From Ranitomeya imitator (Eukaryota): 64,000 bases of DNA. The notes beneath the pieces were generated by a model. It was given only the letters and a program-made list of their open reading frames with translations. It made no database searches and was not told the DNA's origin. The stretch spans positions 515,096,001 to 515,160,000 of the forward strand of contig NC_091283.1 in assembly GCF_032444005.1 (NCBI RefSeq). Reading direction: 5' to 3'. Positions 51,281-52,328 of this stretch are shown here, one piece after another. The position numbers and the translations under genes were made by a program. Numbering within the stretch: the stretch's first letter is position 1; the number at the start of each line of letters is the position of its first letter.

Positions 51281-51417
51281 TCAGAGAACCCTTTCCATTT
51301 CAGAAGATATTCAACCTTCCCTTTAACCACCCGCCTGTCTAGAACCTTTTCGACAACATATTCTTCCTCCTCTTCATCTTCTACTTCCATTTTTTTCTTG
51401 TTTTGCTTTTTCCCCAA
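51281..51417 (-). CDS. CBX1: CBX1 coding exon 1 (chromodomain N-terminal part); start at TTG 51417 (180 aa) or ATG 51390 (171 aa); exon begins 51447
   Basis: [46 protein letters not shown]; acceptor ATACAG| at 51448/51447; donor GA|GTAAGT. Confidence 0.9.
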
Positions 51418-52328
51418 AACTGTCGCCAGGTTGTCGGTGTGATGGATCTGTATGTATGGGGCAGAGAAGAAATCAGAGATGAAGACACTATACAAACATA
51501 TTGAAAAAATAATTATGCATGAAACAAATCATATGCTAGCATCAAGCTGTGCCAGTGAAAACGGTGGCATCCATTGAAAGGAGTTATCAGGTTTTATATA
51601 CCCCCGTTAAGGAATTCTCATCTTTTGGCCAAATTAGAGAGTGGTTACAAAACATCTCACGTTCTAGGGAATCTGCATTTTGAATTACACCCCTTCGATT
51701 TCGTGTAATAACTAATTTTCCCTGTGGTGGTGCTGTAGGAAGACAGAACACTTACTATAAGGTTTCTCAATGACAATTAGTGATCAGTAGACAAAAAGAT
51801 ACACAACTAATACTCATGAGATCACCCCAGGTGCTGGAGGGGCTCACCTACCCACAATATGTGCCCCATGTAGGAACCAGCGAGGGTTTGGGACCACTAG
51901 GTACAGATGGCACGTGAAGAAAATGCAACTGTACAGTTGAATGCAAGTGAACAAGTGGATATTAGGGAATGCAGAGGACTGCAATACAACGCCACGTAAT
52001 GGACCAAGGTCAGATCCCAAGTAGGAGAAGAAACAAAACGCTTCATTTACTTGGGGTCACTGCAGCTTTGCCTGTTGGATCGTACTGTGAATTGTTCATT
52101 TTGCTGACCAGCGCCTGGAGATTATATGTGACTAATGACATGTTATCTGTCAATTTGGAATTGTTCAGGATTTTTTTTTAAAGGTGAAAATACAAGTGTA
52201 TGACATGATTAGTGGATCATCTGCTAACATGGAGTCTAAAATGAAAAAAAAGAGCTAGTCCTCAATTTTTAGAGTGGCATGTTAAGGGTTGAATCGAAAA
52301 GTCAACTTTGCTCTGGATGAACATATTG

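Follow-up and report, generated by a model that had tools for sequence, protein, structure and literature searches.

TTG in place of the canonical CBX1 start codon in Ranitomeya imitator: a candidate upstream CUG start for the basic tail of HP1-beta

HP1-beta, the product of CBX1, ranks with the most strongly conserved proteins of chromatin, and its N-terminal extension is commonly regarded as fixed. In the 64,000-nucleotide stretch of Ranitomeya imitator DNA analysed here (NC_091283.1, positions 515,096,001 to 515,160,000; called the window, in whose own coordinates all positions are given), CBX1 lies on the minus strand and has TTG at the position of the canonical initiator ATG. This raises the question of whether the basic N-terminal tail of the protein, GKKQNKKK, is still made and, if so, from which codon its synthesis begins. 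Here, we weigh a model to which we give a probability of roughly 0.6, namely that two isoforms would arise by leaky scanning, one of 184 residues initiated at an in-frame CUG and one of 171 residues initiated at the first AUG of the mRNA, with the 13 codons upstream of this AUG still translated.

The canonical ATG is replaced by TTG in a genuine, expressed CBX1 gene

Judged from its sequence matches, the gene in the window is an intact ortholog of CBX1, which it resembles more closely than CBX3 or CBX5. On the minus strand it comprises exon 1 with the 5' leader (54004..54228), exon 2 with the last part of the leader, followed by the codons for the basic tail, for the acidic run and for the first half of the chromodomain (51281..51447), exon 3 with the hinge and the second half of the chromodomain (50225..50390), exon 4 with the start of the chromo shadow domain (48346..48440) and the coding part of exon 5 (48094..48238), which ends in the stop codon TAA at 48096-48094. 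Exon 1 was placed by spliced RNA contigs, exon 2 by RNA joints and its Pfam match, exon 3 by its joint with exon 2, Pfam and RefSeq identity, and exons 4 and 5 by Pfam and RefSeq identity. Exons 2 and 3 match Pfam PF00385 (Chromo), exons 4 and 5 match PF01393 (Chromo_shadow), all above the curated cut-offs, and the PDB matches of the exon translations are chromodomain structures of CBX1 and CBX5. When compared one exon at a time, the translations of all four coding exons, read from ATG 51390, are exact substrings of the R. imitator protein XP_069607841.1 (171 aa; chromobox protein homolog 1). A search with the open frame of exon 3 returned frog CBX1 proteins of 174-176 residues, with the top homologs all named CBX1, and the 90% clusters of these proteins include 171-residue RefSeq entries from Ranitomeya imitator, R. 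variabilis and Dendrobates tinctorius.

Exon 2 is bordered on the minus strand by an AG acceptor (first base 51447) and a GT donor (last base 51281). The cag of the acceptor is followed by six codons (ATC CAT CAC ACC GAC AAC), then by CTG GCG ACA GTT, by TTG, by the eight codons of the basic tail (GGG AAA AAG CAA AAC AAG AAA AAA), and finally by ATG and the acidic GAA GTA GAA GAT GAA GAG. This segment offers three candidate start codons, and around each of them the base at -3 is a purine and the base at +4 is G. The in-frame CTG (51427..51429; A at -3, G at +4, context AAC CTG G) lies four codons before the canonical Met position and is proposed here as the main non-AUG start. The TTG (51415..51417; G at -3, G at +4) occupies the position of the canonical CBX1 initiator ATG, both in the window and in RNA contigs. 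The ATG (51388..51390, context AAA ATG G) corresponds to canonical residue 10 and is the annotated start of XP_069607841.1, whose annotation places the 13 preceding codons in the untranslated region (UTR). The tail codons (51391..51414) are in frame and intact, and the frame from CTG 51429 to ATG 51390 contains neither a stop nor a further ATG. On all these points, that is the TTG in place of the initiator, the flanking CTG and ATG, their shared -3 and +4 bases and the preserved tail codons, the window agrees with what an earlier sequence-only reading had described.

The same reading had raised the possibility that the TTG is an assembly error, and transcripts bear on it directly. Four sequencing runs, taken as assembled contigs and not as raw reads, were placed on 50150-54700. 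In two of them (X3 and X5, from two studies), one contig each spans approximately 54228..54004 (X3) or 54224..54004 (X5), together with 51447..51281 and 50390..50223; the joints, 54004/51447 and 51281/50390, have minus-strand GT..AG ends, and over exon 2 (51281-51447) no letter differs from the window. Since these contigs are spliced with GT..AG ends and carry no other letters, they are RNA-derived, and their exact match to exon 2 means that the TTG, not ATG, is present in the transcripts. A DNA run of about 95% identity (X12) differs from exon 3 at eight sites, six of them synonymous and the remaining two giving S>T and T>P, which are exactly the two differences between R. imitator and R. variabilis CBX1 in this exon. 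We conclude that the canonical ATG is replaced by TTG in a genuine, expressed CBX1 gene.

Exon 1 as seen in RNA (54228-54004) and the 5' part of exon 2 contain no ATG in any frame upstream of 51390. As exon 1 is devoid of ATG, the ATG at 51390 is the first AUG of the mRNA. The bin 54254-54405 has a depth of zero in both RNA runs. A TGA at 54153-54151 (minus strand) is followed by 49 open codons in the exon 1 frame that is in phase with CBX1, and this stop caps any N-terminal extension at 49+10 codons before the TTG. The sequence-only reading had found no in-frame upstream ATG behind either of two candidate exon 1 donors; the donor in use is the first of them, 54004, and the exon joined through it indeed supplies no ATG.

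The codons upstream of the first AUG vary like translated sequence

Seven frog sequences were compared over this region: the window, L003, L004 (of L004-L007), L008, L009, L010 and the Nanorana genomic locus L013. L003-L010 are Logan transcript contigs, and the seven sequences are phylogenetically related. The alignment is close to impossible upstream, and from AA-CTG onwards the sequence is conserved with a three-base rhythm. Over the 18 bases before the CTG, the mean pairwise identity is 0.62, and the variable sites number 4, 5 and 5 at the first, second and third codon positions. Over the 39 bases from the CTG to the last Lys codon, the identity rises to 0.855 (0.906 without two variable codons), with 2, 2 and 8 variable sites, and over 95-99 bases of undoubted coding sequence downstream it is 0.836, with 6, 2 and 23.

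The amino acids L-A-T and G-K-K-Q-N-K-K-K are invariant in all seven sequences, and so is the CTG itself (7/7), in the context A-A-N-CTG-G. When the two variable codons are set aside, each of the seven variable sites in the remaining 11 codons is a synonymous third position (P=7.7e-5 if sites are placed at random). Over the full 13 codons, third positions account for 8 of 12 variable sites (P=0.005), and within the GKKQNKKK codons alone the synonymous third positions account for five variable sites out of five. Frameshifts in relatives had been named by the sequence-only reading as a mark of simple truncation; the slippage-prone A run of this segment has no indel among the seven aligned frog sequences, and the variation over the CTG-to-ATG codons is of the coding type. 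On this comparison, the 13 codons from the CTG to the residue-10 Met bear the signature of translated sequence, and the signature begins at the CTG.

We propose that ribosomes would initiate at the CUG (51429-51427), decoded as Met, and that this start would yield a protein of 184 residues which keeps the basic tail. Ribosomes scanning past the CUG would start at AUG 51390 and produce the tail-less protein of 171 residues, i.e., the RefSeq form. The UUG at 51417 may serve, at most, as a minor third start. The locus has the layout of leaky scanning, with the CTG at 51429 (and the TTG at 51417) followed by AAA ATG G at 51390 and no ATG between them, and both products are predicted from it. It also has the features of a non-AUG extension: a near-cognate codon in good context, an open frame, no upstream AUG (which is true of L003, L008 and L009 as well) and coding-type substitutions.

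The canonical ATG has been lost in several frogs

The sequence-only reading had presented the loss of the ATG as peculiar to this genome. This view cannot be maintained, as other frogs carry CCG, ACA, ACG or GTG at the same position. In R. imitator, with its TTG, there is no stop eight codons before Gly2 (the exon 2 frame is open) and no ATG in the leader. The canonical codon is CCG in L003, ACA in L009, ACG in Nanorana (L013) and GTG in L008, where it is shown as M by a bacterial-code gene caller. All four have an in-frame stop eight codons before Gly2, namely TAA in L003, in L009 and in Nanorana (just past the exon 2 acceptor) and TGA in L008; the leaders of L003, L008 and L009 contain no ATG. 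A fifth sequence with a stop at this place (TAA), L010, has the canonical ATG only, so that four of the five are ATG-less. The contigs L004-L007 have ACG at the canonical position, no stop, and an in-frame exon 1 ATG 18 codons before Gly2.

The upstream stop is seen inside exon 2 in Nanorana and aligns to exon 2 sequence in the transcript contigs. With a stop eight codons before Gly2, no upstream exon can supply a start in L003, L008, L009, L010 or Nanorana. In L003 and L009, the CTG is the only efficient near-cognate codon between the stop and Gly2; besides it, Nanorana has ACG in this interval, and L008 has GTG and ATC. Since the upstream stops close the frame and the CTG is shared by all ATG-less sequences, the CTG is the common candidate start. 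Exon 1 shows no conservation of its frame, which stops interrupt in other frogs. Two further contigs from the same transcriptome study as L004-L007 (L011:312 and L012:208) have one extra A in the run before the residue-10 ATG, which shifts the exon 1 ATG out of the CBX1 frame; 63 contigs keep the frame.

Among named amphibian proteins, the canonical Met is kept in Xenopus laevis, Hymenochirus, Dendropsophus and Staurois. An extra Met four codons upstream (MAASM or MATSM) is found in Bombina, Leptobrachium and Hyperolius, Pelobates reads KLAASM with a start farther upstream, and salamanders have Met at the -4 codon and Val at the canonical position (MAT[TA]VGKK). The ATG at the -4 codon is the annotated start in Ambystoma, Pleurodeles, Bombina, Leptobrachium and Hyperolius; in Lissotriton, the -4 Met is in frame, just within a slightly longer annotated start. 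Proteins annotated from residue 10 (MEEV, MEDV or MEVE) come from Nanorana, Gastrophryne, Hyla sarda, Eleutherodactylus coqui, Anomaloglossus, Phyllobates, two Ranitomeya and Dendrobates. The loss of the ATG is common to five dendrobatoid species and is also found in distant families; several neobatrachian frogs thus share the layout seen here, in which the canonical ATG is missing but the CTG and the tail codons are preserved. All sampled anuran CBX1 proteins contain KKKM, or KTKM in the case of Pelobates, and this includes the proteins with a retained canonical Met (Xenopus, Hymenochirus, Bombina, Pelobates, Leptobrachium, Dendropsophus, Hyperolius and Staurois). Since the residue-10 Met occurs in every anuran sampled, that ATG is older than the loss of the canonical one, and it is not new, as the sequence-only reading had called it.

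Outside the amphibians, fish, lungfish and sharks have longer N-terminal extensions of CBX1, and the canonical position is often occupied by a residue other than Met. In ray-finned fishes GTG, GTA or codons specifying A, G, E or L stand at this position, and the annotated starts lie 20-30 residues upstream. Two fish contigs have GTG and GTA there (L001:518-520 and L002:967-969), and fish genomic open reading frames returned by a search with the 72-aa open frame of exon 2 encode A, G, V or E where the Met would stand; this search returned no close frog relative. A K-L-A motif before the canonical position is kept from sharks to mammals, and in mammalian translations the four residues before Met are L-A-G-A (KLAGAM). 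Such upstream in-frame translations came from a search of representatives clustered at 50% identity, a level at which no frogs were retrieved. On this evidence, the MGKK start seems to have arisen in the tetrapod era by shortening of an N-terminus that was older and longer. If our reading is right, amphibian CBX1 would have shifted its start repeatedly among four places: 18 codons upstream (AUG), -4 (AUG or CUG), the canonical position (AUG) and residue 10 (AUG). More tentatively, and with odds that we would place somewhat below even, the tail-bearing HP1-beta of several neobatrachian lineages may be made wholly from a CUG kept since at least the tetrapod ancestor, the canonical AUG having been lost repeatedly as redundant next to this CUG and the residue-10 AUG.

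Comparison with known near-cognate starts

EIF4G2/DAP5 is known to be translated from GUG only. For CBX1 itself, in-frame extensions of 4, 41-42 and 54 residues from near-cognate codons are reported for human and mouse HP1-beta in a preprint of October 2026 (10.64898/2026.10.13.758779). They rest on ribosome profiling of start sites and on N-terminal peptides and are described there as conserved across mammals (10.64898/2026.10.13.758779). The mammalian and frog cases are alike in gene and frame, in the site four residues before the canonical Met (the Leu of K-L-A-x-x-M/x-G-K-K, which is CTG in the frog) and in coding-type conservation within the annotated 5' UTR. They are unlike in that mammals keep the canonical AUG and have the +4 form as an extra, whereas in the frog this AUG is gone and the CUG would be the sole route to the tail. 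Moreover, the +41 and +54 extensions, which block the PxVxL groove, have no frog counterpart, and the mammalian site is experimental, whereas the frog site was located by sequence.

Conserved non-AUG N-terminal extensions were described by Ivanov et al. (2011, Nucleic Acids Res, PMC3105428) by the same logic as here, i.e., from a near-cognate codon in good context, no intervening stop and codon-periodic substitutions upstream of the annotated AUG; CBX1 was not found in the full text of that paper. In comparison with those extensions, the frog one is very short (13 codons to the next AUG) and is partly the ancestral N-terminus, not an addition. In the CBX1 of salamanders, Bombina, Leptobrachium and Hyperolius, the -4 ATG is homologous to the frog CTG and precedes the same tail (MAT[TA]VGKK, MA[AT]SMGKK), with Val at the canonical position of salamanders; unlike the CTG, however, it is a real AUG, so non-canonical initiation is unneeded there. 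A literature search on Xenopus HP1-beta returned nothing on start codons. The near-cognate CBX1 start of mammals and the annotated short frog protein are already known, and the novelty here is that frogs have lost the AUG repeatedly while retaining the CUG and the codons of the tail.

Retention or loss of the basic tail

The 171-residue annotation could simply be correct. In such a truncation, AUG 51390 alone would be used, the basic tail would be absent, and the upstream codons would be 5' UTR, kept as an A-rich context or undecayed. This fits the fact that 51390 is the first AUG, in a strong context and with no AUGs upstream, and that residue 10 is the start chosen in the RefSeq models of nine or more species of frog. 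The residue-10 Met, being older than the loss, was a functional start already at hand, and some frogs have codons at the canonical position (CCG, ACA) that are not starts at all. A UTR element, however, is not expected to vary at synonymous third positions only, with the periodicity of coding sequence, nor is its conservation expected to begin exactly at an in-frame CTG. There was also ample time for decay, given that the loss is shared by the five dendrobatoid species and reaches distant families, and the adjoining 18 bases are down to 62% identity. We thus regard truncation, the main alternative, as unlikely. The sequence-only reading had left non-AUG initiation with leaky scanning and loss of the tail side by side; the coding-type variation and the upstream stops favour the former, and the initiation event itself is what we infer.

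Several points nevertheless weigh against the two-isoform model. The step from conserved codons to CUG initiation in frogs is drawn from sequence, and RefSeq annotates the short protein only, from an AUG whose strong context counts here as well. The seven sequences compared are few and related, and several are contigs from SRA transcriptomes. Constraint on the A-rich tract could also act on the RNA, where the tract forms the context of the AUG. The extra A in L011 and L012 breaks the frame, and it is either an assembly or slippage error or else tolerated variation, a real allele. In mammals, the +4 form is a minor one, one of several, beside a dominant AUG, and by this comparison the efficiency of the frog CUG may be low. 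The equation of the +4 site of the preprint with the Leu codon of KLAGAM is our reading of mammalian translations; the codon is not named in the available text.

The codon at which the tail-bearing protein would start

If the tail is made, non-AUG initiation might occur mainly at the UUG 51417 or at other near-cognate codons of exon 1, and not at the CUG. The TTG has G at both -3 and +4, the same site holds GTG in L008 and ACG in L004 and Nanorana, the exon 1 frame of R. imitator is open for 49 codons, and several upstream near-cognate sites are used in mammals according to the preprint. However, L003 (CCG) and L009 (ACA) keep the tail codons without a near-cognate codon at the canonical position, the L-A-T codons upstream of this position are conserved with synonymous changes only, and the frame of exon 1, unconserved as it is, is closed by stops in other frogs. 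It seems improbable, therefore, that the UUG or an exon 1 codon takes the place of the CUG as the main start.

An unrecognised upstream exon or an alternative promoter could also provide an in-frame AUG, and the tail would then be made from a normal start. One frog (L004-L007) has such an ATG in exon 1, 18 codons before Gly2, the CBX1 of fish and lungfish starts well upstream, the exon 2 frame of R. imitator is open back to the acceptor, and the sequence offers, as a purely formal candidate, an in-phase ATG at 52464 with a GT donor at 52411. In both RNA runs, however, the only joint shown at the exon 2 acceptor is the one to 54004, and the exon so joined is without an ATG. Moreover, upstream AUGs are closed off by in-frame stops in L003, L008, L009 and Nanorana, where the tail codons are still conserved, and the ATG at 54236 lies upstream of the contig ends and out of phase, in a frame terminated at the exon junction. 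An upstream AUG is hence very improbable in our judgement. Lastly, an assembly or sequencing error with a true base giving ATG can be dismissed almost entirely. No observation spoke for it, exon 2 of the window is matched throughout by two RNA-derived contig sets, each from a different study, and the downstream Met is where the RefSeq proteins of R. imitator, R. variabilis, D. tinctorius, Phyllobates and Anomaloglossus all begin.

Two individual ATGs were considered as starts. The ATG at 54234-54236 (minus strand) lies just 5' of both RNA contig ends and is out of phase; if transcribed, it would open a 77-codon upstream open reading frame that ends 17 bases before the CTG, at a TGA that arises where exon 1 is joined to exon 2. 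On account of its place outside both contigs, its phase and this TGA, it was rejected as a start. The ATG at 52464 with the in-phase donor 52411, which is the only candidate among the GT donors in 51448-57000, is supported by no RNA-contig joint shown.

Consequences of CUG initiation or of truncation

If initiation at the CUG is true, the basic tail of HP1-beta would be made in many frogs by non-AUG initiation only. This would be an independent evolutionary confirmation of the mammalian near-cognate CBX1 start, and it would provide natural genotypes in which the role of the basic tail can be asked. On the more tentative reading of a tail-bearing form made wholly from an anciently kept CUG, the +4 site would be both ancient and sufficient, and ATG-less frogs would represent natural AUG knock-outs. 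Start-codon stringency (eIF1/eIF5) would then determine how much HP1-beta carries the tail relative to the tail-less form, tying translational control to heterochromatin. If CUG initiation holds, annotation would be systematically incomplete, with RefSeq models of at least nine frog species starting at residue 10. If truncation is true instead, the basic tail of HP1-beta would be dispensable in frogs, which is informative for HP1 biochemistry.

Other features of the locus

An older R. imitator model, CAJ0965414.1 (404 aa), joins three pieces: a fragment of a Tc1/mariner-like transposase from upstream of CBX1, exon 1 translated out of its proper frame, and the coding sequence of CBX1 with GKKQNKKK included. 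Its pieces in the window lie at 58574-58951 and 54004-54310, both on the minus strand, and the model is a chimeric annotation artefact. Open reading frame fragments of Tc1/mariner-like transposases flank CBX1 at 31179-31685 (minus), 43229-43915 (plus) and 58574-59333 (minus).

The neighbour of CBX1, arranged tail to tail with it, is the last exon of a CNC-bZIP gene at 25844-27094 on the plus strand (an open exon of 416 codons; bZIP_Maf, 1.5e-16), whose best PDB matches are NFE2L2 and NF-E2, of the NFE2 family. We take it to be probably the last exon of NFE2L1, as expected beside CBX1.

Intron 2 of CBX1 contains a very high-copy short repeat at 50758-50909, with a summed contig depth of about 1.35 million in the DNA run X12 and of 10-30 thousand in the RNA-like runs. 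Many opposite-strand joints are centred near 50810-50845. This suggests a foldback element or a palindromic element resembling miniature inverted-repeat transposable elements, which is transcribed too. Long minisatellite-like tandem arrays occupy 6872-8183, 8666-10921 and 24082-25097; several of their frames are open on both strands, giving spurious open reading frames of up to 726 codons.
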